A stretch of DNA of 63,078 nt, the filler included, from Corallochytrium limacisporum Hawaii (lineage: Eukaryota; Protista; Pluriformea): the NCBI GenBank assembly GCA_002811645.1. It is 4 parts of 4 records of this genome, joined end to end, with 100 filler letters (N's around TTAATTAATTAA, not from the genome) between each part and the next. Parts side by side here need not be neighbours in the genome. Positions count along the whole stretch, not along the records: positions 29,078 to 60,227 come from PDIP01000147.1; 3 more parts are not named here. One strand, given 5' to 3'. The notes under the pieces were generated by a model. That model was not told the origin of the DNA and did no database searches. It saw only the letters and a program-made list of their open reading frames with translations. A program made the translations under genes and the position numbers. Shown one piece after another: positions 29,078 through 58,485 of this stretch (its first letter is position 1; each line of letters opens with the position of its first letter).

Positions 29078-30003
29078 CCCCCGGGGGGGGGGGGGAGGAG
29101 AAAGTGGCGGGGGAGGAGGAACCATAACAGACCGTGTGCCCCGAATTTTTTTTAGGCACAGAGCGCACAGCTAGTCCTTTCGTATCGATATGGATAGAGG
29201 GGAAATCGATTGAGAAGGTCTGTAGTGGGCCAACCGATCCAACGCTGAGCCATCCGCGACTTACTCACGGCACGGGGGATACAATGGTCCGGAGGACATC
29301 GAGGGCACTGTAGAAACAAGAGTGCCATCTTACAGAGCTGCGACGACTCAGCCATCTTTAAACCCAACTGGCCTGGAGTGCTCTCCTGTTCGGTGGTAGG
29401 ACTTGGTGTACGCTGTAGGGTATAGTACCGGGAAGGAGGAACACATTGTCACCTGAAGCGGCGGGAAAACACCGTATCCCTTATTCGTGGCCCCCGACTC
29501 GATTCGACCTCTCCGGAAATGGCTAATGGGTATGAGTGGTGTGTGGAGTTGTTGCTGCTTGCATTGCATTATTCAGAGGCATTTTCGTTGCAGCGTCTGC
29601 AATATCCTTTAATCGGCCATCGGGGGAGAGGGGGGTGATGGGGGGCTTGGGAAAAAGTTTCTATACTATCTAATCCTTCTCCCTATCTGTGGTGGCACCC
29701 TCCGCGCGAAGTATTTGCACATTATCGAGACCCACTAATCGAAGCAATAGCTTCTTTGTCCCCGTAGATATCTGACAGGTGGAGAATGCCATTCAAATCG
29801 ACGTACTTGAGATGTCCGAAAATGTCGCCTATCGAGACGTTGGCGTACCTGTTGCGGCAAATGATTCACTTCCTACTCGTTAAATCTCGCTGGTTCAACT
29901 ATGACCACCTAACAACGATAGCCTATACGTCAACGGTGAATCTAAGTGGTGACTCTGGTTACTGGAAAATGTAGTACCAACTGTCCAGCTAGTTGCAGTA
30001 GAC

Positions 30004-30981
30004 ATGTTGGTGAAGTCCAATTGGCTTCCTTTGAAAGTTATGGCGTTCGGCTTTCCCCGCAGATCCCGGTCAGTGACTATTCTCTTTGTAGTCGGATTCC
30101 TGCTCCTGCTCCACTGGCAAGGACTCTTCTTTGTAAAAAGAGGAGGTTGGTTGGGACAAAGGATGGGACGAAGGGCTCATATCCAGGAGTATATGTCTCA
30201 TGGGGAGGGATTGGAACAAAATCCCGTATATATGAACGTAATTGTTAGCCTTCGGGGACGGCTCGATCGGCTGCAAGTGCTTATAGACTCACTAACAGGT
30301 GCGGCGGCCGCGCTCCCGGAAAGAGAAAGATTTGTGAGGTTTATTGTCGTCAACTTTGACGCGGGAACAGAGTCGGAAATTGGGGAAATGCTGAAAACGC
30401 TATCCAAGAACTCAAAGATCGAGACTACGCAGATCGAGAAGCGATTGGCCGACGGAGGCTTCTCGAGAGCGGGTGGGATCGCTGCAGCCATCGATGCGGT
30501 CGACAATCCTGAAGACCTAATATTCGTCGTTGATGTCGACATTGTTCTCGGGCCTCGTATTTTCCATGAGATTAAGCGGAATGTTCTGCGTTCGATTCTC
30601 CCGGATAAAATATACTTTCCTGTGGTTCGTATGCTTCGGAAAGGTGAGGACGCGGAATGGAATGAAAGGGGTGAACTTATTGTCCACGATGCGGCGGAAC
30701 CGGAACGGGCTGAGAATGGTGAGCTTATTGAGCCCGAAGATGGCATTGAATTTTGGAATTATCCAGCATTTGGAGTGTTCGCCGTGCACAAGTTCAACTA
30801 TCTCCGTTGCGGAGGCTTCGTAGCCTCTGATCTATCACGCGATGTATGGGGTAAGGAGGACAACCGCATGTTCGATAACTGCAAGCTGCATGGCGTGCCG
30901 ATACAACGGAGCGAAAGCTATTCTATGGCACACATCTTCCACAGCAAGCGACCATGGGGCGTTTCTGCAGACGGAACTTAA
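30004..30981 (+). CDS. Type II membrane GT-A glycosyltransferase, chondroitin GalNAc-transferase/B4GALNT (GT7-related) like
   Basis: N-terminal TM anchor followed by FSRAGGI, LIFVVDVD (DxD), IYFPVV, WGKED and HIFH motifs. Confidence 0.85.
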   Translation: MLVKSNWLPLKVMAFGFPRRSRSVTILFVVGFLLLLHWQGLFFVKRGGWLGQRMGRRAHIQEYMSHGEGLEQNPVYMNVIVSLRGRLDRLQVLIDSLTGAAAALPERERFVRFIVVNFDAGTESEIGEMLKTLSKNSKIETTQIEKRLADGGFSRAGGIAAAIDAVDNPEDLIFVVDVDIVLGPRIFHEIKRNVLRSILPDKIYFPVVRMLRKGEDAEWNERGELIVHDAAEPERAENGELIEPEDGIEFWNYPAFGVFAVHKFNYLRCGGFVASDLSRDVWGKEDNRMFDNCKLHGVPIQRSESYSMAHIFHSKRPWGVSADGT

Positions 30982-31157
30982 GCGAGCAACCTTAGAGCAT
31001 ACATATCAAAACATTACAACATAAATATGCAAGAGATCACCTTTATGAACAGTTTCGGATTTTTGTCAACACGGCAGCAGGCGGTCTTGCTTTGATATTG
31101 TGGTCTCACGTAAGCCCTGTCGTACTCTGTTCGTAAGCAATACTTTAGTGAAGGTGA

Positions 31158-31343
31158 CTGAAAGCGTTAGTAAAGCCTATGCTCGTCACAAGGAAAGGAC
31201 CGAACCTTGGAAGAACGATAAATCTGAAACAAGATGTGAGTGTGAAGGTCATCAAATAATGGATTATGAAAGTATCTTCGTGTCCGGGGAGATGATGAAA
31301 GACACAAGACGGCTTACATAGCACATGAAAACCACGAGCATAC
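31158..31343 (-). other. Putative last intron of the snoRNA host (donor uncertain: GTATGC at 31343 or GTAAGC at 31317)
   Basis: TACTAAC at 31172-31166 followed by GCTTTCAG acceptor ending at 31158. Confidence 0.55.
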
Positions 31344-31598
31344 TGCGTCTGGTGAGTCGCATTTGACCATTGCGCAAATGGCTCTCCCACTTCAGCGCCA
31401 GGGTACTATCATCTGACCTTTGATGTGTTCTCGCTAAGAGATCGTCAACGAGCGTTAGATATCTGACACACCATGCTTCAGTGTGCTCGATTTCCCTAAT
31501 TCTAACATATACCTACCGCATTGCATGCTATTCCAATATGACTTCGATAGTGTCACATAATGCTTTGTGCACACGTTAATGTATGCGAGCGTGTCGAA

Positions 31599-31863
31599 CT
31601 GCAAAAGAGATAAGTGGGCAGGAGGTATCAGTTAGTAACCTGAGAGTATCATTTGAAACGACACGAAGACCGGATACCGGAGTGGAAAGGGCAGTGGAGA
31701 GGTAAGTCCTTGTCAGGTAATAGGAAACGTGATAATTCGTTTGGTCACATATGCATCTTGTGCTTTCGAAGTGAGCTGAGTAAAATTTGCTTCATCGTTC
31801 TGGACCAATTTTCCACTGCTTATGCAGTCCGATTAACTCGGCCTCTCGCGAGGTAGTACTTAC
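31599..31863 (-). other. Spliceosomal intron (265 nt) hosting the U29/snR71-like snoRNA
   Basis: GTAAGT at 31863, TACTAAC at 31637-31631, TCTCTTTTGCAG ending at 31599. Confidence 0.85.
31706..31805 (-). ncRNA. Box C/D snoRNA, U29/snR71-like (LSU rRNA)
   Basis: C-like box ACGATGA (31798-31792) and D box CTGA (31716-31713), with terminal stem GTCC/GGAC and outer stem GCAGTGGA/TCCACTGC. Guides ACTCAGCTCAC and ACGTTTCCTATTA are complementary (one G:U each) to the conserved LSU segment UAAUAGGGAACGUGAGCUGGGU. Confidence 0.85.
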
Positions 31864-31874
31864 AGTTTTGTTTT

Positions 31875-32108
31875 CTGTGGGGCAGAACAGATCTCAAAGG
31901 GTTAAAGTTGTTAGTTAGTATGGTACGCTCCTGTACATACTGAGTCAGATGACGTGGGTGGTTCAGTGCCAAACTCAGCAAATGGTATATTGTCTCATGG
32001 CTCAATAGCTCTGAAGTAGCAAATATAAATCATACCATCATAGCAAGGCGTATTCAAACCGGGAATATTGGACAATCTATATATTCGACCCAATATTGTA
32101 TGACTTAC
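31875..32108 (-). other. Spliceosomal intron (234 nt) hosting the U24/snR24 snoRNA
   Basis: GTAAGT at 32108, TACTAAC at 31920-31914, CTGCCCCACAG ending at 31875. Confidence 0.85.
31970..32046 (-). ncRNA. snR24: Box C/D snoRNA U24/snR24 homologue
   Basis: Boxes: C ATGATGG (32041-32035), D' CAGA, C' ATGAGAC, D CTGA (31978-31975). Guide ATATTTGCTACT pairs with conserved LSU AGUAGCAAAUAU. ATATTTGCTACTTCAGA matches yeast snR24 as recalled, and the D'+5 rule gives the Am1449-equivalent. Confidence 0.88.
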
Positions 32109-32345
32109 CTGCAAGGAATAAAGCTCATTAGCATGCAAAATTGTGTTAGTTGACCCATAGTTGTGAAATGAAGAGATTTAGAATGTGAAGTTGTACTTGC
32201 TCAGAGAAACCTTCAGTTCATCGAAGAAACAAGCCTATCTTGATTATAAAGTTCCTTCTAAGTCAAGAGGTGTCAGAGACGTTTTCTTCAAGGCCACAAC
32301 TTCACACCCCAAGACATGATCCCATGCGCTCCAAAAATTACCTAC
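32109..32345 (-). other. Spliceosomal intron (237 nt) hosting the U60/snR48-like snoRNA
   Basis: AAG|GTAGGT at 32345, ACTAAC at 32150-32145, TTTATTCCTTGCAG ending at 32109. Confidence 0.8.
32196..32296 (-). ncRNA. Box C/D snoRNA, U60/snR48-like (LSU rRNA)
   Basis: C-like box TTGAAGA (32291-32285), C'-like CGATGA and D CTGA (32204-32201). Guide TCTGACACCTCTTG is complementary to LSU (CA)AGAGGUGUCAGA. A perfect 11-bp flanking inverted repeat lies at 32296-32306/32184-32194. Confidence 0.8.
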
Positions 32346-32976
32346 CTTATCAGGGAGAAACGAAGTTCACTATTGCACTTTCTTCCATTGCATGAGGCCA
32401 GCCGCTCTATGGCGGTGGCTGGCCAAGATATCAGCTTCGAAGATTGGCATGGTACGAGTTATCTTCTAGCCCTAATACCTTCATAACGTTTTTTATGGGA
32501 ATGATCTACAATTTCTGGTAGGTGAGTCACCGATAAGTAAATCATTAGGGCATCTGTAGGACACATGAAAACATTACAAAGCCGTGCCCATACAAAGCAG
32601 TGGCACGCACAACACGCGGTATCCCAGCCGTTCTGGCCCCCACGCACACCAGAAGTCGAGTAGGAATGCTTACGTTTAATTCACATAGTTATATATTAGG
32701 GGTTCGGTGTATTTTGAGAAATCAAATGCTGGAGGGGGGTCTGGTTTTCCCTTAGTGACCCCCCTCTTACACAAAGTGATCAACGGGCCTGCAAGAAGCC
32801 TGGATTTCGGTCGTCTGTGGTGTAGGTGTAACCGGAAGGGTGTTTGGTGGCATCAACAGTGCGCTGCCCTACACAAATACACATATGCAAGTGGGTATAT
32901 ACACAAACCCTGCCAGTGGAAGCCCTGTGTAAGCATGCCAGTGGATGTGATAGGTAGTCGGTTTGGCGAATCATGA

Positions 32977-33381: not shown

Positions 33382-34961
33382 ACCGACAATACCCTAGATT
33401 GATTGAGATGCTCGTCTTCAACATAGTGATGCACGCCTCAGATTATGTATGCATCCAATGTTCTTAGTCGAACACTCCTCGCTTCTGTTGCTCTAGGACG
33501 GTCAGATGCGCATGCGACAATCTCATACGAAAGTTGTCATGGTATGTACAAACCGCCATCACGAAGCGAAAAACTTGCAGCATTGGTTTGACAGAGCGAT
33601 TGAACAGGAACGCATCTACGTATACCTGAATCCGGTCACTTTATTGCAGACCCGCGCAGATTCGCCCCCCCCCCCGGCCGGGGGGAGGGGGGTTCACGGA
33701 CTTCTCAGCACATGACCAAAAGGAAGCAACTAAGACCTAGCAGAACATCAATGACACCTTACGATATAGTTTCAGAGATTGCCACAGGCCTTGTGGTAGG
33801 ATGTATTGTGCTATGCAAATGGTTAGGACCACGGCTGTGTAAGACTTAAATACAGCAGCAGAGTACTATCTCAGTTGTATTTTGATTATCGCTGACGATG
33901 TGGGGTCGTATCGAGTCATCTTGCCTTTGTAGGAAGGTCTGCTAAACACCCAGATTTATGTGATAGCGGTGTCATAAGGAAAGTGGTAGGGTCCCAGTTT
34001 GACAGTAACAGTGTGTCGGCAGAGTATACTGAGTGTGCTCCCAATTTGCAGGGTACTTCGGACAATGATAAACATAATACTAAGAGTTCAAAGAACAGAG
34101 CTCACATGGTCAAACCCGGACGGTAGATATATACAAGACATATGGTCCGATCCGAAGGGCGACATGCCGATGACAACAACGAGCCAGAAACTAGCCAATA
34201 GCATTGGCACCCTACTCCCAGGAATCCCCTCCTATGATCCAATATGGGGTCTTGTAGCTCCAAACTTTGGTGCCACCTCACGTTGCAGAGGGCCACGATA
34301 ATAAATAGCAAAGCCAGACACAGTACGCCCAGGACGACATCTCACCATTGGAAGCGTCATCAACAAGAGGGACGAGCGAGTTGGTCATGGAAAATCGCCA
34401 ACACCACCCCCCCTCCAGGGGCCCCCCGGGGGGGGGGGGGNNNNNNNNNNNNNNNNNNNNNNNNNNNNNNNNNNNNNNNNNNNNNNNNNNNNNNNNNNNN
34501 NNNNNNNNNNNNNCCCCCCAAGGGGGCCCCCGGGGGGGGGGGGAAGAGGGGGGAAGAGCAGATTTGTTAGATGTCGCCAAGATCTCCAAAGTGTGCCATC
34601 TGTTCAAAAGTTTGCTAGGTATCACCAATACGAGACGAAGGCCAATTTTACTTTGTTGCTTTTACCTGCTCTATACGAAGACATCAAGTTCTCAGTAGAT
34701 GGACGAGATCATCGAGTATCGACCAGGTCGAATCGTATTGCTTCCATCTTGTACCACCGTGGGGTTTGGGATGTGGATTTGTCCATGTCGTTGTAATTGA
34801 GATAGTCTAGTTTAGTGCTGAGTAGATAGATACAGTTTAGCATGGACAGAGAAAGGTATATATTGGAGACGGAAAGTTCCGATGAACAGCCAGGGGCGTA
34901 GATCAACATACCAGTCGCCCTAGAGGATGTACTCGTTGGTTCTTGCAAACCAAAACTCACT

Positions 34962-42160: not shown

Positions 42161-45100
42161 TCAACTATCATTGCTCTGCGGATCGGGTGGGTCATCATCG
42201 TGACCGTTCTCCACCAACTCATCCAAGTGTCCCAAAGATCGGTAGTAGAGCTGATGAACGTCTTGGTAGGTCAACCGTGCATCCATCTCTCCCACCGCCT
42301 TCCCGGAACCTGACGTCGGTCCACCACCCAGGCTCTGTCGCGTGCTCTGCGTGCGGTACGTCTGTGATGTGAGGGCTAAGATGTGCTCCTCGATGCTACC
42401 CTTGATGCCGAATCGGTACACAAAGGTCTCCATACGCTGTCCCATGCGGTGCACACGGTTCACGGCCTGGTCCTCTTCCGCTTTGTTCAAGCTCGGCTCA
42501 ACCAGGAAGACGTGCGTTGCCTCGGTGAGGTTCAGTCCCCGGCCTCCGTCCTTGAGGCGCAGGAGCAGGCACGTCACTGCCGGGTCGCGCTTAAAGGAGG
42601 CAATGGCGCGCTGGGCCTTGACATTGCTTCCGAGCGCACTCAGACATCGCACTCCGGCGCCTTCGAGGGCATGGTGAATCACTTCGAGGGCGCGAGTCCA
42701 TTGGCTGAAAATCAGGCACTTGAACGGCGCCTGACCAACAGATCCATGCCGCTCCTCCGCAATGTCCGCGACGAGGTCGACGAGTGCGTCAATTTTTGTG
42801 GAAATCTCGGACCGGCGGGGCCGATGGGTACCGTTGCTACCGGCACCACCGCCAGCAGCAGAGGCAGTATTATCAACATGAACAATCGCGTCGATGGCAA
42901 ATTGCGCGCGGCATTTTGGGCACGGCATGCTCGCGCGGTGTCCGAAGCGTTCGAAGTAGTGGAAGGTGCACTCATTGTGCATGCCATGTGCGCAGGGGAA
43001 GAGCGCAAATTGGTGCATGAGCGGTTGGAGGCAGACTGGGCAATCTTCGTGGTGGACTGCGGTCGCCTGTTGCTGGTGCTCCTGTCCTTGCTCCGACTCC
43101 TGGTGCTGCGGGCGCTGGGTTTGTTCGGGCTTGACTGTGGCTTTTGATGACGCAGGCGTACTCAGGTGCTTGAGATAGATTAAATGGCCCTGCTTTCTTC
43201 GCAGAGCATCCTGCTCGACCGTACAATCCGCCTGGTGCCGCCGCAGCTCCTCATCGATGCGGAACGGCTCGATCCACAGTGTCTCCTCATGTGGCGCCAC
43301 GATCTGCTCCGGCCTGCGGATGCGAATGCGATGGCAAAACATTTTCACTTCGTCCCTGGCACTGATGAGATCGTGTGCCTTGGTCCAGAGCGTGCCGAGA
43401 GTCGACCAGCGCTCCTTCTTGACCTGCGTGAATCGTGCGAGGAGGTCATCGCCGTCCCTGGACACGTCGTCTCCGACCGGGGCTTTGCTGGAGTGATGAT
43501 GTCGAATGACCTGCAGTGTTGCTTTAGCGATCAGTTCGCACAGGCCGTCATCGCGCATAAAGGCATTGTCCTTCTGCTGCCGACCCACTACGTCCATTTC
43601 TGATTCCATCCGTTCCGCCGCGCTCAGACCAAACAACAGACCGTCAAAAATCAGCAAGTGTCGGTTAATCCTACAGAAATCACATTCAGGACCCGTACGT
43701 AGCAGGTCTTGCCTACACTTTCCGCAGTTGGCCTGTCGCTCCACCCAGATTTCGTCCGAGAAATTCGCAACCACGGTGCGCAGCATGCTCATGACCTCGT
43801 CCCGCTTCTCGCTGATTTGACCATACTTAGTGGCAAAGAGATAGTGCACTCCCGCCAGGCTGCGCATGCCCATCGCATCGAGGTTAGCGTAGGCACCGGA
43901 GACGTCCTGGTACATGGCCTGGATGCGACTAAGCACCTTCTTCTCAAGGGAATGACTGGACACGTAGGCAAGCATGGCTGCCCATTCGGGCGGACCGTCG
44001 TGGCTTTCCCTCTTTGGCGGTACCGACGAGGCCCCGGCGCGATACTTGTCCCAGAGACGCAGACGCTGTGCGGACTGGTCCAGGGCACCTAGTGCCTGCT
44101 CCATGGCACGCTCAAAATCGCGTAAGTACGCCTCAATCAGTGTCTTTTCAGTTTGCCGGAGAGAGGTCAGGTCGTGGCTGATGACGGATGCCGAATCATC
44201 CACAACGGTCTTGCTCTCCTTGATGATCTCCCCCAGATTGTGGATGGAATGTAATTTCTGCATAGGATCCAGTCGCACGTCTTTGCGCAGTTGCTCCTTT
44301 GGCTGCTCTTGCTGCTCCTGTTGCTGACCATGGCTTTCCGAGGTGTGAACATCGATCTTGAGGACCCGGTTTCCATCGGTCGTGGGGTCCTTTTTGGCAC
44401 CGATTTCGTTGCCCTTACTGTCCAATGCGATGACAGCATCGTACGTCTCGATAGCCTTAACGGTTTCCCCTTTCATATAGTAACAGGCTGCCATGCCGTT
44501 CATGGCCATTGCCAGTTTCCGCTGCACTTCTTCCGCTTCCACCGTAGTGTTGGCAATCATGGCATCGAGCACGTTCTGCAGCGTCGAGGTGGCCTTGCTC
44601 AAATTATGCGTGGTACCACCTTTGATGGAGATCTGGGGATGCACACACGCTCTGCGCAACGGCCACAGGTTCTCAAGACAGCGCCGCAGCTGTTCATTGT
44701 CCGTTGTTGTGTAGTATCCGGCTCTGATCCCGCGGTGCCATGCATGTAGTACCTTCTCCATCTTCGGGCGAATGGCCTCCTGCTCACGTGAATAGAAGTG
44801 GGCCTCAATCGGGCTCAGTTCCAGCGAAATCATGCTTTCTGACTGCGGTGGAATGTACATTTCGCTAGCTACAAGATGCTTCTCGTTTCGCCACATCAGC
44901 TCCACCACCATCTGTAGCTGCAGAGTGTTCAGGAAGGGTGTGACGCCGTTCTTGAGCAGTGTCCACAGCTCCGGATCCCTGTCGAAGAGCGGAATACGTA
45001 GTAGACTACTCAGCCCTTCCAAATCTGGCAGCGCGTGAGACAGAGGCGTCCCCGAAATGCACCATCGATTCACGACGTTGAGCATGCGTGCCACTTCGGC

Positions 45101-46735
45101 TGCCTTGGATGTCCGACCCTCGACCATCTGCACCTCGTCCACGCACATGCGCCACCATTCAATGCACGTTAGTGGGCTTGAAGGAATGATTCTGCGCCGC
45201 TTGTGCCGACTCGATCGTTCCACACGGTTCTCCGGGATGTAATGTACCTCAGAACGGAACGTCGAGTAGGACACTAGGACCACATCAGCCTCCATCAGTT
45301 CTAGCGGGGACACGTAGCCTTGCTTCTGGATACCCTCGTATATGATACATTTGAATGCTGACATGTCGCAGTGCTTCTCGATTTCCTCCTGCCACTGAAG
45401 AAGAATTGATTGCGGGCAGACAATCAGGGTGGCTGCGGTAGGGAAACGCCGGTTCCGAATACAGGTTGCACAAATGTAACGCTTGGGGCTGAGTCGGGAC
45501 TGCAATTTCCTTGATGTGATAATGTCCTCGATTTCATCGATTGACGAGCAGGCGATGCATTCTATTATCTTCCTGTTCCTCAAAGATTTGCTGTCGCTGT
45601 CGTCCGTATCAATCACTTCCTTTAATCCCAGCGACTGTAATGTTGGCCTATCACGTTGATGGGTTAAAATGGTTGCAATTGTCTCTACGGTTTTGCCGAG
45701 GCCCATTTCGTCCGCCAAGATTCCACCACGCACGTTGCCGAATATGGTCTCGGTCCCGCTTTCATCGTGATCCGTACCATGGTCCCCGTTTGATGTGCCA
45801 TGGGCATCTTGATGATAATGGTGATGATACTGCCCTTCTTCTTCGTCCTTCATGGTGGCACTGCCATTGGCATAAGCATGCCCATTTATGTTTGGTACGT
45901 TTCCCGGCAACTGCGACTGCTGTGTGGCAGCAAAAGTTCCGGTCACCACATTAAAGCTGATCAGCTTTTCTTTTCTATTCTCACCCTGCTCCCAAGATCC
46001 CTCTACCGGCAGCACAAAGTCAACGCAACTGCGGCCACCATAGACATCCAGCACCGATAACACAGTATCGTCCGCCTTCTGAACCGGTTTCCAAGCTACT
46101 TCCTGCTCCCGGCTAACCATCCAAGCAACGACGTGCGCCTGATATGGCCGTAGCATTGCATTTAATCCGATGATGCGCGGTGCAGCAGGACGCTCAAGAC
46201 CGGTGGGTCGTGCAATTTCCAAAAGATCCTTAACTGAGGATTTCGCTACAGTTCTGTTCAAACGCTCTGATCCGTAGGAATCCTTGAGCCAGCCGCGGTA
46301 CATTTGGCCCAGGATCGAGACCAGTATGCGGTATACCCGGTCATGTAGGAGCCAACGGCATGCTAATGTCTTCTTGCCCTCAACCACTAACCGATGCAAT
46401 GTAACGCTGACAGTGACAGTCTCCGGGTTGCGCGTGCGCTCCGAGATGGTGACTCGAAGCAAACTGGGGTCTAGTTGTGAGAGTCCATAGAGCACTTTCT
46501 GCGTACTGATGGGATCTTCATCGAAAAGAAGCTCTCGCCCAGTTCTGGCGCACCGCAAGGTTCCTATTCCTACTTCACCAATAAAGGCTGGAACACTCCA
46601 AATGATCCCGAACAATTCCGCATCCGTGGCACTGAACTGTGATATCGATACAAAGGGCCCTTCTGTCCGCAACCGTTTGACTGGCCTGACGTCAGCCTTT
46701 CTATTCTTGTCCGGAACTGCTTTCCGCCTCACCAT
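42161..46735 (-). CDS. SHPRH: SHPRH/Irc20-like SNF2 ATPase with RING E3 ligase
   Basis: LRPYQ...WM..RE, GGILADEMGLGKTVE, TLIVCP.SIL.QW, WWRMCVDEVQ, RWCISGTP, LRRACVHPQ, EAEE.QRKL....NGMA, a RING finger, STKID, LIFSQW, GLNLTEATHVFLVEP and QAVNRVHRMGQ. Confidence 0.93.
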   Translation of the reverse strand: MVRRKAVPDKNRKADVRPVKRLRTEGPFVSISQFSATDAELFGIIWSVPAFIGEVGIGTLRCARTGRELLFDEDPISTQKVLYGLSQLDPSLLRVTISERTRNPETVTVSVTLHRLVVEGKKTLACRWLLHDRVYRILVSILGQMYRGWLKDSYGSERLNRTVAKSSVKDLLEIARPTGLERPAAPRIIGLNAMLRPYQAHVVAWMVSREQEVAWKPVQKADDTVLSVLDVYGGRSCVDFVLPVEGSWEQGENRKEKLISFNVVTGTFAATQQSQLPGNVPNINGHAYANGSATMKDEEEGQYHHHYHQDAHGTSNGDHGTDHDESGTETIFGNVRGGILADEMGLGKTVETIATILTHQRDRPTLQSLGLKEVIDTDDSDSKSLRNRKIIECIACSSIDEIEDIITSRKLQSRLSPKRYICATCIRNRRFPTAATLIVCPQSILLQWQEEIEKHCDMSAFKCIIYEGIQKQGYVSPLELMEADVVLVSYSTFRSEVHYIPENRVERSSRHKRRRIIPSSPLTCIEWWRMCVDEVQMVEGRTSKAAEVARMLNVVNRWCISGTPLSHALPDLEGLSSLLRIPLFDRDPELWTLLKNGVTPFLNTLQLQMVVELMWRNEKHLVASEMYIPPQSESMISLELSPIEAHFYSREQEAIRPKMEKVLHAWHRGIRAGYYTTTDNEQLRRCLENLWPLRRACVHPQISIKGGTTHNLSKATSTLQNVLDAMIANTTVEAEEVQRKLAMAMNGMAACYYMKGETVKAIETYDAVIALDSKGNEIGAKKDPTTDGNRVLKIDVHTSESHGQQQEQQEQPKEQLRKDVRLDPMQKLHSIHNLGEIIKESKTVVDDSASVISHDLTSLRQTEKTLIEAYLRDFERAMEQALGALDQSAQRLRLWDKYRAGASSVPPKRESHDGPPEWAAMLAYVSSHSLEKKVLSRIQAMYQDVSGAYANLDAMGMRSLAGVHYLFATKYGQISEKRDEVMSMLRTVVANFSDEIWVERQANCGKCRQDLLRTGPECDFCRINRHLLIFDGLLFGLSAAERMESEMDVVGRQQKDNAFMRDDGLCELIAKATLQVIRHHHSSKAPVGDDVSRDGDDLLARFTQVKKERWSTLGTLWTKAHDLISARDEVKMFCHRIRIRRPEQIVAPHEETLWIEPFRIDEELRRHQADCTVEQDALRRKQGHLIYLKHLSTPASSKATVKPEQTQRPQHQESEQGQEHQQQATAVHHEDCPVCLQPLMHQFALFPCAHGMHNECTFHYFERFGHRASMPCPKCRAQFAIDAIVHVDNTASAAGGGAGSNGTHRPRRSEISTKIDALVDLVADIAEERHGSVGQAPFKCLIFSQWTRALEVIHHALEGAGVRCLSALGSNVKAQRAIASFKRDPAVTCLLLRLKDGGRGLNLTEATHVFLVEPSLNKAEEDQAVNRVHRMGQRMETFVYRFGIKGSIEEHILALTSQTYRTQSTRQSLGGGPTSGSGKAVGEMDARLTYQDVHQLYYRSLGHLDELVENGHDDDPPDPQSNDS

Positions 46736-47416
46736 CCTCGATGGTGTGTGATTCCCACCAGGGGTACGTCACCGGTGTTCTATGTCTTCATTTGCTTCAC
46801 GCAATCCTCTTCACTGTGTAGGATGCTATACTTCTATTGGTCCATTGATCTGTTCGGTATCCTCGCCTCCGAACGGTATACTAACTTTTTCAAATGGAGT
46901 CGGCTAATGCCTAGGTCGCAGAATATGAAGGGATGTCTTGGCATGTCCGAAATACCCACATCGTCGCACGAGCTTTCGCGTCGGTCGGACGGTTCTGGGC
47001 GGGTCTCAAAAACTTGGGGAGGACGAGGGGGGGCGGGGAGCCCGAGATTTGCATTAGAACCCCCCCCCCCCCCGGGGGGGGGTGAGAGGGCCGCAAAGAT
47101 TTGGGCCGAAACGGCGAGATTGGGCGGGTGCGCCAAAAGTTAAACACTCTGACTGATTGGATTCCGGGTGAGCGGTTTTTGAGGGTTACGCAAGCTTAGC
47201 GATGCCGATGGAGTTTGCTACTCTCAGACTGTCCTTAACCGATGCGTCTGGCTGCTGTAGAAGTGGCTCACAGGTAGAAGAAGAGAAAAAGCCACCTGCT
47301 CAGTGTCAGATCTGGAACGGCAGAGACTGTCAATCGCGGACAGAGAGAATTTGTTTGAATGGTGCGACGTCATAGCAGTGTCAAATAGTGCGATGTGACC
47401 GACTGAGTATGTAAAG

Positions 47417-49219
47417 ATGGCTGTAAGCACGAAGTCTCGGGCACCAGAACCCGCAAGATCGCAACGAAAGAAGGCCAGACGCACAATTCCAAAGAATGAG
47501 GAAGAGGAAGACATGGCCCAAGATCAGCGAACAAAGGCCCAAACTGGCTTGTACAGCCTTCCCGAGGAAATTCTCGATGTCATTCTTGAATGTACGGGTT
47601 TGCGTACGCCTCGCAGTGCAGAGGAATTGATGCAGGTAACCGCACTTGCCTCCCTGTCTCGGGGTCTTCGTTCTGCCTTCCGAAACTGTGTCTCGGAGAT
47701 CACGCTGAACTACCCAGTCGAACAAGAGTACGATGTCTCCTTGGCAGTTGAATATTGCGCCACCTTCCGCAATCTGCGTCGATTGACACTGATTGACGAG
47801 TCCAAGAGCGCAGATTTTTCCAGTGGCTATCCAGCGCTGCGAAATTCCAGTATTGACACACTCATTATCAATGGCCAGGCCAACTTCAGCGCCGACGATT
47901 TTGACACGCTGCTGCAGATGAAAAAGCTCTCCTGCTTGAAACTTTGGAACTGCAATTCCACCGAAGATTGGTCGGTGTCCCTGCCTACTAAGGAGAGTGC
48001 AGCCTACCGCTCTCGCTCTCTAAGAGAGTTAGAGCTGAGGCACTGTGCCATGGATCAGCTGACGGTTACGCATCGGTCCATTGGTTTCTATCACTACCTT
48101 ACCGAAGTGTTGACCTCACTCGAGAAGCTGACCGTGCGGGCGGTGAAGCGTCGGAGAGGCTCTGGTGCAGGCCATCTACCGTTCATGCTCGGAGGTTTGT
48201 TGACGACCATGAAGAACACGCTGCGAGAGATCAATTTGACGGGCACGGACTTCACCTTCCGTGACGTCGAAATTGAGTGGCCGCAACTGACGCATCTAAG
48301 CCTGAGTCGGGTCAACATCATGCCCATGACTCAGCCATGGAGCCGCACCAACAGTAATACACCGTTCCCGCAGCTGACGCACCTCTCCGTGAATCACGCG
48401 CTGGAGGCCGCGGCAACGTTGTTCTGCTTTCAACGCCAAACCCTGCGACGGCTGGTCGTCCTCGAAGTCATCGATGACGGACCGCGCGATGCCTCACTAG
48501 CAATCAGTCACATCAATCGTGCCCTCTCGCAACCCGTACCAGACGATTCGGACCCACGTCCTTTGCGCTACCTCACGCTTCCCGTGCCGTTCCGCGACCA
48601 GGAACGGGAAACTACTATGCTCCTTCCCTTTCAGCACCGCCTGGCCACGCTTCGACTGACTGGCAGGGCCGACAAATCAGTGTCAAGCTTCACTCTCGAG
48701 ATGCTGCGCTACTGCCGGAGGATAAGTCGTCTGGATATTAGCTACAATGTCGGTATCACATCGAATGTCTTCACACGCATCGTCCGCCGATGGGCTGAAG
48801 TTGACTTTGCTAAGAGACTTCAAGTGCTGAACCTGGCCAGTATCCCGATCACGGATGCCAACATGAAGCAAATTGTGCGCTGCTGCCCAAACCTAGTCAT
48901 GCTGAATCTAAACTACAACACTGAGATCACTGTTGAGGCGGTTAAAGCACTATCAGTATCAGATTCACTGATGCATGTGCTCCTGTTTCGGTGTGAGTTC
49001 GCCAAGAAAACCAAGGGTCGTCCGGATGAATATTTCCGGACCTGTCGGTGCATCTGTGGCGGATACTTTGCGCTCACAGACCTCATGCCTGGTCCCTATG
49101 ACCCGTGTGCTTCGACCTCCCTCGTAAAAGACCCACTTATGGATCAAGCACCGAACACAGAGGAAGAGCTAGACTATGACATTCACAGTGTCCACCGCGC
49201 TATGAAGGCCTTCGTCTAA
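47417..49219 (+). CDS. F-box/leucine-rich repeat protein
   Basis: F-box-like LYSLPEEILDVILE followed by degenerate LRRs (LDISYNVGIT, LNLASIPITD, CPNLVMLNLNYNTEIT). Confidence 0.8.
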   Translation: MAVSTKSRAPEPARSQRKKARRTIPKNEEEEDMAQDQRTKAQTGLYSLPEEILDVILECTGLRTPRSAEELMQVTALASLSRGLRSAFRNCVSEITLNYPVEQEYDVSLAVEYCATFRNLRRLTLIDESKSADFSSGYPALRNSSIDTLIINGQANFSADDFDTLLQMKKLSCLKLWNCNSTEDWSVSLPTKESAAYRSRSLRELELRHCAMDQLTVTHRSIGFYHYLTEVLTSLEKLTVRAVKRRRGSGAGHLPFMLGGLLTTMKNTLREINLTGTDFTFRDVEIEWPQLTHLSLSRVNIMPMTQPWSRTNSNTPFPQLTHLSVNHALEAAATLFCFQRQTLRRLVVLEVIDDGPRDASLAISHINRALSQPVPDDSDPRPLRYLTLPVPFRDQERETTMLLPFQHRLATLRLTGRADKSVSSFTLEMLRYCRRISRLDISYNVGITSNVFTRIVRRWAEVDFAKRLQVLNLASIPITDANMKQIVRCCPNLVMLNLNYNTEITVEAVKALSVSDSLMHVLLFRCEFAKKTKGRPDEYFRTCRCICGGYFALTDLMPGPYDPCASTSLVKDPLMDQAPNTEEELDYDIHSVHRAMKAFV

Positions 49220-53679: not shown

Positions 53680-56600
53680 ATGGCGCCGAAGCCCCAGCGT
53701 CGGGCAACCCTTAAGGGGGCGCCACCACCGCCACCGCCGTTGGAAGAGCCCGGCAGTCAACCCTTTTTGCCGCCACGTGCGAGCGTCAACGGATCCGCGA
53801 CCGACTCGGAAAGTCTGCGGTCGAATAGCGAGGAAACAGTGCGGGAACAGAAGCGCTGTGTTGTACGTCTGCGCCTGCCCGCGGGCACAAGTGCTTTCGC
53901 GGCCACAGCAGAGAAGACAATCTACCATACCCTACGGGACCAACTCAAGTCAAAAATGGTGGACATTGCCACACACGGCATTTACCACGCAGACACATAC
54001 AAACCTGTTGAATTGCTCAAAACCATGGAGTCGATTCATGGCAAAGAGTTGTTGGTGTGTCCGTTGGGTGGGCTGTTCCTGATCAATATCAGCCTCGGAA
54101 GGCAAATTCGGAAAACCTGCCTGTTGGACGGTACAGCACCGGAACTGTATCTGAAAGTCAGCCAACTAACCGGCATGCCCGTTTCGGACCTGGATTTACA
54201 ATTCAGCGACGGGTCAAAACCGGTCAAACTGGACTCTAGCCTCGAAAAATATGCAAAGAAACCAAAGGACGATGCACGGCTCATCAAGGTCAAGGTACTG
54301 CTCAAGAAGCAGGATGAAGAACTGCTGTCCGAGGAGCGTGACTCATTTGGCCAGCTTGTCACGGCCTTCCACAAGGGTGTAAGCAGAGCCGGCAGCGAGG
54401 AAGAGTTGGATTTCATGGACTTCCTGGCGGACACAGACCTGCGTCAACCTCCCAAGATCAAGCGCCTTCACGTCCTCCAGGAACTCATCGAAACGGAACG
54501 CAGTTATCTCAACTCTGTCCGGCAATGTATGGAGTTCTACATGCGACCCATGGTGGCCCAGAAGGTTATCACTAAGGCACAGTCCAACTCATTATTCAGT
54601 AACATGGAGGCACTCCTGGGCATCAACGAGGCTTTATTACGTGACATCCTGTCGCGCGTTCCTGAATCCAACCTTGGGGACACCCAGATTGGTGACCTTT
54701 TCCTGGCCTTTGCGCCATATCTGAAAATGTATAAGGTGTACTTTAGCACTCACGCCGAAGCCCAGAATCAACTTGCTGGCATGGTCAGTATGAACGATCA
54801 GCTGGCGCAGTTCCTCAAGGAGCGTGGTACATTTGGAGTACCAACCATGGACAGTCTGCTGCTCATGCCCATTCAGCGTGTGCCGCGATACAGTCTGATG
54901 CTCCAGCAGATGCTCAGAGCCACTGGGGAGGATCATGCCGACCTGCACGCACTGGAAGCCGCTGTGACGGAAATCGGAGGCCTGACCAAGGACCTCAACG
55001 AAAGTGTAAAGAAGATTGAGAACCAGGTCAAGCTCATGGAAATTGAGCGGGGCTTCCCATCCGACGTACTGTCCCTACTGGACACCATGAACGTTGGTAC
55101 AGTACGTGTCTATAACAATCGTCGATCGACGATGACGCCAAATGACTCCCTTAGCTCCGCAGATCTCGCCGAGTTGGTAAATGGTAAGCGTGGACAGTCA
55201 CCGTCACTCAAACGTCGACTCTTCGGCGGAGGCAACAGTGCCACCAATGGCACCCGGTCCAGTGGACGTGGATCGGTCCACAGCGGCATGGGTGTTGTTG
55301 AGGAAGGGCAGGTCAACGGCCAACAGCGCATCATGCGCAACATTGGCAATCCCTTTGACGTCAACGAAGCAAGTCGCTGGTTTGTCATCGAGGGACCTGC
55401 GATGGAGGCAGTCACAGGCGACTTTAAACAGCGCCAGCGCCATCTGTTCCTGTTCAGTGATTTATTGGTCGTGGCCAACCGCAAAGGACAGCTCGCCAAC
55501 GGGAAGCCGTCGTACCGTCTGCAGTCGTGGATGCCCCTCCACGAGCTCTGGGTCGCCGACGAAGCCGTGCAATTAGATCAGAAGTCTCTGGTCGTCGGCT
55601 GGCCCGGCAGTGAGTTTACGTTCACGTTCGAGAACAAGACCGAGAAACAGATCTGGGTGGCTAAGCTCAAAGAATGGGTCACCAAGGCAAAGGGTGATAA
55701 CTACACTAAAGGTTTGGTCAAGGTCTTTGGAGACCTCTTGATTCCTCCCAATTTGCTCGGTAAAGGTGACATGGTCGACAACATGTCCTCCTGCGATGAT
55801 CTCATCAAGAAGGTTGCCCCCAAGCTCTTGGGCAAGAAGACGGGAGTGGACTTCAAGTCGTATTGCCTGTGGGCCATGATCCCGGGCCCCCAGTCGAAGC
55901 TCAAACGTCTCAACAACTACGAGTGCCCTTTGCTGCTCACGCAGTTTTGGGAGCGTCTGCACAGCGAAATGGTTTCACTCAGCGGGGACGCCCTCCTCGA
56001 TCCCGCGCTTGTGCCCACCCCGGGCGCCGCGACGGATACCGCCACAAGAAAGCGTGCCGTGCTGTACCTGAGGCACGTAGCGGATGTCCGCGATGTCGAC
56101 CCAGAGAATGTGCGTGCGGCTGCAATGCAGAACCCCGACGACATCATTGCGGCAATCGGAGAGAGTGCCGCAGCAGACCGTGTGAATAACGCGACCAAGT
56201 CCGGTGCGGAACTCGGCGGCAGTCTCAAGGTTGGCAACAAGGGCTCACAGCAAGTTCCTTCTGGCCCCGCTACGGTGGGCCGTGGTGGTACCATCCGCGG
56301 CAAACTCGCCAATCTGTTCGTGAAAGACTCGTCGAATTCCACTGCTGATCCCAGTAAGCTGTTGCGTGGAAACTCAAGCCTCCTCGAGGCCGAGGAAGCC
56401 TCCGACGGACTCTTTGGTCTGCCCTTGCCCAAGGTGTGCGTGGACGGCAAGCCACCGAAGCCCATCTACGACATGCTGGACACCCTCTGGGACAATGCCC
56501 CAGGCTGCCAGGGCGTGTTCCGTCGCAGTGCTAATGCGCGCGTGGTACGTGAGCTGTCCGAAAAGATGGATGCTGGTGAGACGGAAATTTCCTTCCGCGA

Positions 56601-57129
56601 TGAGAATGTTCTGGCGGTCGGCGCTGCCCTGAAGAGTTACCTGCGGTCCATTCCGGACTCGCTCTTCAACACGGTCAACTACCGCAAATTTATCGACACC
56701 AACGCCATTGCAGGTGATGATCAGCGCGTTGTGGAACTCAGCAACTTGCTGGCCAAGTTGCCGGATGAGAATCGCCTGCTCATTCGCTTGATTGTTCACG
56801 TTCTGAAGCATGTCGCTGCCAAGCACGAGTCAAACTTGATGGATGCCAGCAACTTGGGTATTTGCGTCGGACCGTCTATGATTTGGTCCCAAGACGCTAT
56901 GGATATGGCCCGCAATGACGTTGCTCCGTTGATTGAATTCATGATTGACTGTGCTGACCAACTTTTCCCGGACTTCACACGCGAGGAGCTCATCCTTGTT
57001 GGAGAACCCGAGACGGACCCCGAATCAGACGCAACCAACACCACGGCCGGAGTCGAGGTCAAGGGGGAGGACGCCCCCAACCAGGTCGGCACCCCACTGA
57101 TTGAGATCCCGGAGGATGCTGAGTTCTGA
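53680..57129 (+). CDS. Multidomain Rho regulator: RBD/ubiquitin-like + DH (RhoGEF) + PH + RA + RhoGAP (ARHGAP20/TAGAP-like)
   Basis: First ATG at 53680 (MAPKPQRR). DH motifs ELIETERSY and LLLMPIQRVPRY; PH motif RHLFLFSDLLVVA...VVGWP; RhoGAP motifs LFGLPL, GVFRRSAN (Arg finger), ALKSYLRSIP and NLMDASNLGICVGP. Confidence 0.92.
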   Translation: MAPKPQRRATLKGAPPPPPPLEEPGSQPFLPPRASVNGSATDSESLRSNSEETVREQKRCVVRLRLPAGTSAFAATAEKTIYHTLRDQLKSKMVDIATHGIYHADTYKPVELLKTMESIHGKELLVCPLGGLFLINISLGRQIRKTCLLDGTAPELYLKVSQLTGMPVSDLDLQFSDGSKPVKLDSSLEKYAKKPKDDARLIKVKVLLKKQDEELLSEERDSFGQLVTAFHKGVSRAGSEEELDFMDFLADTDLRQPPKIKRLHVLQELIETERSYLNSVRQCMEFYMRPMVAQKVITKAQSNSLFSNMEALLGINEALLRDILSRVPESNLGDTQIGDLFLAFAPYLKMYKVYFSTHAEAQNQLAGMVSMNDQLAQFLKERGTFGVPTMDSLLLMPIQRVPRYSLMLQQMLRATGEDHADLHALEAAVTEIGGLTKDLNESVKKIENQVKLMEIERGFPSDVLSLLDTMNVGTVRVYNNRRSTMTPNDSLSSADLAELVNGKRGQSPSLKRRLFGGGNSATNGTRSSGRGSVHSGMGVVEEGQVNGQQRIMRNIGNPFDVNEASRWFVIEGPAMEAVTGDFKQRQRHLFLFSDLLVVANRKGQLANGKPSYRLQSWMPLHELWVADEAVQLDQKSLVVGWPGSEFTFTFENKTEKQIWVAKLKEWVTKAKGDNYTKGLVKVFGDLLIPPNLLGKGDMVDNMSSCDDLIKKVAPKLLGKKTGVDFKSYCLWAMIPGPQSKLKRLNNYECPLLLTQFWERLHSEMVSLSGDALLDPALVPTPGAATDTATRKRAVLYLRHVADVRDVDPENVRAAAMQNPDDIIAAIGESAAADRVNNATKSGAELGGSLKVGNKGSQQVPSGPATVGRGGTIRGKLANLFVKDSSNSTADPSKLLRGNSSLLEAEEASDGLFGLPLPKVCVDGKPPKPIYDMLDTLWDNAPGCQGVFRRSANARVVRELSEKMDAGETEISFRDENVLAVGAALKSYLRSIPDSLFNTVNYRKFIDTNAIAGDDQRVVELSNLLAKLPDENRLLIRLIVHVLKHVAAKHESNLMDASNLGICVGPSMIWSQDAMDMARNDVAPLIEFMIDCADQLFPDFTREELILVGEPETDPESDATNTTAGVEVKGEDAPNQVGTPLIEIPEDAEF

Positions 57130-58011: not shown

Positions 58012-58485
58012 TCACTGCTTCTGAGGCACAGGCGCCTCGGGAATCTCAGGCAGCTGCGGCTGGTACTGTGCAGCCGTCATGCGAGTCACCGCAATACCGA
58101 TACCCTCAATAAGAGCCAGCAGAATACCCCCGATCGCAGCGCTCTTCAGGGAGGCGCTCACACCGGAGCGGGCAGCCAGCACACCACCGGTGGCTGCACC
58201 ACTCATGATTGAGTTCCAGGGGTCCTCAGTGCGACGGACCGCAGCGAAAGTGCAGTCAAATGTCGAGAACAGACCGCCCCAGGCGGCAAAGTTCCCTCCG
58301 AGAACCGGACCACGGGCCTTGGCGGCAGACAGAGCACCGCGCAGGGCCTGACCCTTGGGGCTGTGGCGGAAACCCTTGTAGAAATGGACCATTGAGCCAC
58401 CAATGGCACCCAGGCTAAAGGCACCACCCAGATCATCGAGGATGCGGTATGGGCAAGGGTCGCGGGCGTGCTCAACTTCGCTCAT
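58012..58485 (-). CDS. TIM17: Mitochondrial import inner membrane translocase subunit Tim17
   Basis: [46 protein letters not shown] and [10 protein letters not shown]. Confidence 0.97.

Follow-up and report, generated by a model that had tools for sequence, protein, structure and literature searches.

Two introns that each hold a box C/D snoRNA lie back to back, with a zero-length exon between them, in a host gene of Corallochytrium limacisporum, and we think it likely that they are removed stepwise, intron 1 first and then intron 2, each snoRNA leaving in its own lariat. The host is a non-coding, spliced, polycistronic snoRNA gene of about 1.3 kb with four introns, on the minus strand of the window (the whole stretch of DNA that was analysed, 63,078 nt with its filler, along which all positions count). 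The mechanism is not new; the lineage and the trio of snoRNAs are.

The site between the two introns has splice signals on either side. On the minus strand, an AACTAAC (32151-32145) is followed by a pyrimidine tract, a CAG that ends at 32109 and a GTAAGT that starts at 32108. This bears out the earlier note on this DNA, which had claimed that a 3' splice site abuts a perfect 5' splice site at 32109/32108, that the zero-length exon sits between a U60-like and a U24 snoRNA, and that the composite intron (32345-31875) measures 471 nt: the annotated parts put the two snoRNAs on either side, and the two introns, of 237 and 234 nt, add up to that length. A complete 3' splice site set directly against a 5' splice site, as found here, is one of the marks of recursive splicing at a zero-length exon. 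In its strict definition (ACTAAC, 10-45 nt, YAG/GTAAGT) the motif has a single occurrence in the 31-kb piece of the window that holds the gene and none in 1000 dinucleotide shuffles of it (0 of 100 in a separate run). A looser version appears in 81 of 1000 shuffles, and because this version is weaker we rely on the strict form together with its context and the RNA joint described below. Given the acceptor, the chance that GTAAGT comes next is about 3e-4. By its sequence, TGCTAAT at 32133-32127 is a second possible branch site of intron 1. A 14-bp hairpin (32066-32098, minus strand) directly follows the AG/GT junction, and its stability does not exceed that of shuffles (z -0.11).

The structure of the gene (Table 1) was read with the help of two public runs of 2015 under the same organism label, X1 and X2, used as assembled contigs. 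We take them to be RNA, which fits their splice joints and their lack of coverage of the upstream intergenic DNA. The host exons have tiny ORFs only (21-40 aa) up to the point where the host overlaps the next gene in antisense, and with three introns spliced in RNA contigs and no sizeable ORF the gene is in this respect like a UHG-type host. Three of the four TACTAAC motifs in the 31-kb piece fall inside it, and the spacing from branch point to acceptor in introns 1-4 is 37, 40, 33 and 40 nt. The acceptor proposed for intron 2 fits the three proven by RNA, because its branch spacing of 40 nt compares with 33-40 nt in those. Intron 4 bypasses a CAG 8-9 nt past its TACTAAC and uses the CAG 40 nt away. 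Within 29852-31126, the last exon converges on, and apparently overlaps, the 3' end of a gene of the CHGN family, and X2 has a single contig for both. Just upstream of the 5' end of the host, an inverted repeat (32470-32551, minus strand) closes an 80-nt folded element (z -1.82) that has no Rfam match and no RNA coverage. A low-depth X1 contig also lies upstream of the host (33900-34243), with no clear gene.

Table 1. Features of the snoRNA host gene and of its neighbours, in positions of the window
Feature	Position	Strand	Remarks
Exon 1	32346..32375	-	at least 30 nt, 5' end uncertain; RNA contigs start at 32372-32375; ends in AAG
Intron 1	32109..32345	-	237 nt, GTAGGT...TTGCAG; RNA joint in X2, sole register with GT..AG
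Branch-point motif AACTAAC, intron 1	32145..32151	-	A at 32146, 37 nt from acceptor; predicted from sequence
Zero-length exon CAG/GTAAGT	32103..32111	-	intron 1 acceptor abuts intron 2 donor at 32109/32108; sequence and RNA joint
Intron 2	31875..32108	-	234 nt, GTAAGT...CACAG; putative removal; TACTAAC 31920-31914, 40 nt from acceptor
Exon 2	31864..31874	-	11-nt A-rich micro-exon; 3' end is a donor in X1; 5' end predicted
Intron 3	31599..31863	-	265 nt, TACTAAC 31637-31631; RNA joint in X1
Exon 3	31517..31598	-	82 nt; RNA contigs
Intron 4	31127..31516	-	390 nt, TACTAAC 31172-31166; joint in both runs
snoRNA 1, box C/D, U60/snR48/snoR1-like	32198..32295	-	C box 32290-32285, D box 32204-32201; flanked by a long stem
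snoRNA 2, box C/D, U24/SNORD24 family	31968..32049	-	C box 32040-32035, D box 31978-31975
snoRNA 3, box C/D	31711..31799	-	snR71/U29-like D' guide; D guide like Tetrahymena TtnuCD4; Rfam below gathering; N. crassa CD27
Weak candidate for a fourth C/D snoRNA, intron 4	31286-31207	-	snoR31-like guide; Rfam snoR31 E=5
CHGN-family glycosyltransferase gene	30004-30981	+	PF05679
SHPRH	42161-46735	-	1524 aa, uninterrupted reading frame
LRR protein	47417-49219	+	600 aa, uninterrupted reading frame
RhoGEF + PH + RhoGAP protein	53680-57129	+	1149 aa, uninterrupted
Tim17	58012-58485	-	157 aa, uninterrupted reading frame

Introns 1-3 each contain one C/D snoRNA with boxes and guide, the D box standing 92-114 nt from the acceptor, and all three are predicted rRNA-modification guides. 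An Rfam search of the piece at the gathering threshold returned zero families; the names given here therefore rest on sub-threshold matches, on N. crassa sequences and on homologues. For snoRNA 1, the Rfam family snoR1 scores 25.6 bits (E 0.012, below gathering), the guide resembles that of N. crassa CD8, the snR48/U60 homologue, and the flanking stem is significant (fold z -3.25). In snoRNA 2, the D' guide and the boxes are as in SNORD24 homologues and N. crassa CD51. Its 17-nt guide-plus-D' stretch was itself the search pattern for U24 homologues, and matching C, C' and D boxes flank it in the 15 homologues that were aligned; two of these exceed the Rfam gathering threshold of SNORD24. It has no second guide at the D box, unlike the dual-guide fungal U24 and like 11 of 56 loci, which are single-guide; we therefore assign it to the single-guide U24b/U76 type.

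The RNA joint comes from X2, where 237 nt that lie between 32105 and 32343 are missing from a contig. Of the six possible registers, one alone (+3; 32345-32109) has GT..AG ends, and it puts 32346 next to 32108 with no letters between, leaving exon 1 on GTAAGT and keeping the U24 intron. The joint is known from a single contig of one of the runs, in which its shorter flank measures 33 nt. Relative to the window, X2 has few substitutions and small gaps, as from a second, nearly identical strain, and the AG/GT site is unchanged. The earlier note had predicted exactly this intermediate (exon-AAG/GTAAGT) and had named an upstream AG that creates a real exon as evidence against its reading. The AG concerned, the GAG at 32126-32124, would make a 15-nt exon, which we rejected since the X2 joint has no intervening letters. 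In X1, introns 1 and 2 are unspliced and intron 4 is spliced; intron 3 is partly spliced, in RNA that still has the end of intron 2. Neither use of the acceptor at 31875, nor a 32346-31874 joint, nor a fully spliced RNA appears in the contigs of X1 or X2, which drop rare forms; completely spliced 5' ends, with their first exon of 30 nt, could vanish from them as short tips. Two-step removal as claimed before is thus upheld for its first step by the X2 contig, whereas the joint of the second is absent from the contigs and this step is deduced from its splice signals.

In the order that we favor, the exon 1 donor would be joined at the CAG at 32109, as seen in the X2 contig, and the U60/snR48-like snoRNA would leave in a lariat of 237 nt. 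The resulting AAG/GTAAGT would be a strong donor that is now preceded by an exon. The donor at 32108 would then be spliced to 31875 via the TACTAAC branch at 31915, giving a 234-nt lariat with the U24-like snoRNA. Lariat debranching and exonuclease trimming, the established pathway of intronic snoRNA maturation, would proceed down to the C/D snoRNP and yield separate mature snoRNAs. The exons presumably carry no information and could for this reason dwindle to 11 nt or vanish. The splice signals, by contrast, may have been kept so that each snoRNA has its own lariat.

A DNA deletion in the second strain, or an assembly artefact, is hardly credible as the source of the X2 joint. X2 does have substitutions and small gaps against the window, its RNA status is a guess and the joint is in one contig, but its ends are precisely GT..AG and a branch point goes with them, intron 4 is missing from that contig too, and the upstream intergenic DNA is uncovered. 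If the joint is one of splicing, the donor at 32345 might still be the only one that works, picking either 32109 or 31875, and the 32346-32108 molecule would be a by-product or an end product. The two snoRNAs would then also leave together in one lariat of 471 nt and be separated in another way. The EST and RT-PCR data of Luo et al. could not tell such use of alternative acceptors from stepwise splicing. Yet it leaves unexplained why a perfect GTAAGT stands exactly at 32108, for which chance was put above at some 3e-4, and in S. pombe both 5'-P and 3'-OH ends have been mapped on the spliceosome at a zero-length exon inside such an intron. We consider it unlikely.

Two abutting introns that are spliced independently, either one first, would still produce two lariats, though not by a strict 5'-to-3' ratchet. 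Intron 2 could leave first because CAG/GTAAGT is already a strong donor (its match to the donor consensus is 9/11 before step 1 and 8/11 after) and TTGCAG stays a valid acceptor. The loss of intron 3 before intron 2 in X1 implies that order is not strictly 5' to 3' along the gene, and C. parapsilosis has two routes. Against this, the 32109-31874 joint expected when intron 2 goes first is found in neither run, with the proviso that contigs drop rare forms, and Luo et al. never observed the downstream intron leaving first; free order seems to us quite improbable. Intron 2 might also be effectively retained, 32108-31864 then being a 245-nt exon with U24 that nucleases mature. The contigs of both runs keep intron 2, and fungal clusters include exonic snoRNAs. 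Retention would, however, make accidents of both the perfect donor (again about 3e-4) and the TACTAAC with a CAG at the typical 40 nt (about 1e-2), and the hairpin next to the junction does not surpass shuffles in stability. We regard retention as very unlikely.

Corallochytrium, which with Syssomonas forms the Pluriformea, has a coding intron density of 0.0 per kb (PMC5560861), and its RNA-seq data come from a study of 2015. The long uninterrupted reading frames in the piece fit this near-absence of coding introns. The LRR gene may have an intron in its 5' UTR, to judge from a TACTAAC at 46879 (plus strand) and a GTACGT upstream of it at 46764. The best relatives of the RhoGEF-PH-RhoGAP protein match over parts alone, at about 25-41% identity, and searches for homologues of this protein and of CHGN returned no close relatives and no syntenic DNA. 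SHPRH has distant matches across animals, red algae and plants, mostly at about 28% identity and none above about 35%. The closest relatives of Tim17 are those of Colp-12 (Syssomonas multiformis, 70%) and Opistho-2 (Pigoraptor chileana, 67%). A tree of 32 rows places it in a holozoan group (83/87, not starred), without resolving its exact place, and outside the fungal clade (98/95). Affinity to filamentous fungi was rejected on this placement and on the absence of a SHPRH match above about 35%, and affinity to red algae on the Tim17 tree.

In the literature that we searched, no paper joins Corallochytrium and snoRNA, and there is no report of back-to-back snoRNA introns in the lineage. Our metagenome scan gave 56 real U24 homologues, many of them in an apparent RACK1/ASC1 intron (shared exon end; L027, L031 and L042 were read directly), and none of these 56 distant loci has a cluster of the Corallochytrium type. 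YAG/GT precedes the snoRNA in two, L042 and L092, and we rejected both as support. The former has no snoRNA upstream in spite of a branch-like motif, and its YAG/GT is probably due to chance because its relative L031 lacks the YAG; the latter lies at a contig edge. In L042 (3055-3196, plus strand), U24 has a transcript of its own that diverges from RACK1, and the branch-like motif and TTTTAG/GTGAGT precede the snoRNA. Another small cluster is present in an AT-rich metagenome contig (L113:4645-5332, minus strand), where two U24-type snoRNAs flank snoZ122 within 700 nt.

The locus differs from the conserved fungal clusters I-III (snR78-72, snR57-55-61, snR41-70-51) in its snoRNA set, and its organism stands outside the fungi. 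The N. crassa homologues of snR48, U24b and snR71 are on chromosomes I, VII and VI. Since the snoRNA set differs, these homologues are dispersed and no metagenomic U24 locus is alike, the locus is not an orthologue of the fungal clusters. Its lineage and its different trio suggest an independent origin. The fuller proposition, that the fungal multi-snoRNA design arose independently in this unicellular relative of animals, which has lost almost all coding introns, with a fixed TACTAAC, exons eroded to 11 and 0 nt, ordered recursion and a slow or regulated intron 2, is in our judgment evenly balanced. If the origin was independent, zero-length exons would be a repeated outcome of snoRNA-host evolution and not a fungal peculiarity. 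Recursive splicing for snoRNA release would be extended from ascomycete fungi to Holozoa. The locus is also relevant to the question why a genome poor in introns retains its spliceosome, as four introns lie in a non-coding gene of 1.3 kb whereas neighbours of 600-1524 codons are uninterrupted. Finally, at 471 nt the unit is compact enough to serve in tests of the order in which the steps occur at AG/GT sites.

For juxtaposed, or 'complex', snoRNA introns, the fungal papers (PMC3596301, PMC5033589) cite Mitrovich 2010. Luo et al. 2013 described such introns without exons, with at least 61 cases of exon loss in ascomycetes and intermediates of the 5'-first kind only (PMC3596301), and Donovan et al. 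2016 described Candida snoRNA clusters with nested and recursive splicing (PMC5033589). Zero-length exons between snoRNA introns are thus on record in Euascomycetes, Debaryomyces, Yarrowia, Candida and S. pombe, and this architecture is backed by EST, RT-PCR or spliceosome profiling (PMC3596301, PMC5033589, bioRxiv 10.1101/226894). Intron-poor fungal genomes are also known to keep snoRNA introns. The novelty that the earlier note implied, by setting the site against very long animal introns, does not survive this published precedent in short snoRNA-host introns of several fungi.

The nearest likeness is to the fungal clusters II and III of Euascomycetes, D. hansenii, Y. lipolytica and Candida, where likewise the host is polycistronic and non-coding, each short intron has one C/D snoRNA, the internal exons measure from 0 to a few nt, and 5'-intron-first intermediates have been seen. 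Here, in contrast, the host is a unicellular holozoan and the set (U60/snR48, U24b, snR71) is outside the clusters named there. Animal hosts of the UHG/GAS5 type have real exons between their introns. They share with our gene a non-coding spliced transcript and one snoRNA per intron (PMC2780460). In S. pombe, SPNCRNA.445, the host of snoRNA61, has a zero-length exon in a 336-nt intron, found by spliceosome profiling (bioRxiv 10.1101/226894). It shares with our locus a short snoRNA-host intron with a 3' splice site beside a 5' splice site; there, spliceosome ends were mapped and full removal was obtained by RT-PCR, whereas here step 1 alone is seen, with other snoRNAs and in another lineage. 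The Drosophila ratchet points (bioRxiv 10.1101/006163, PMC8605326) use the same AG/GT and a donor exposed after the first splice, but they split long introns of coding genes, while in Corallochytrium the same arrangement divides 471 nt between two snoRNAs.
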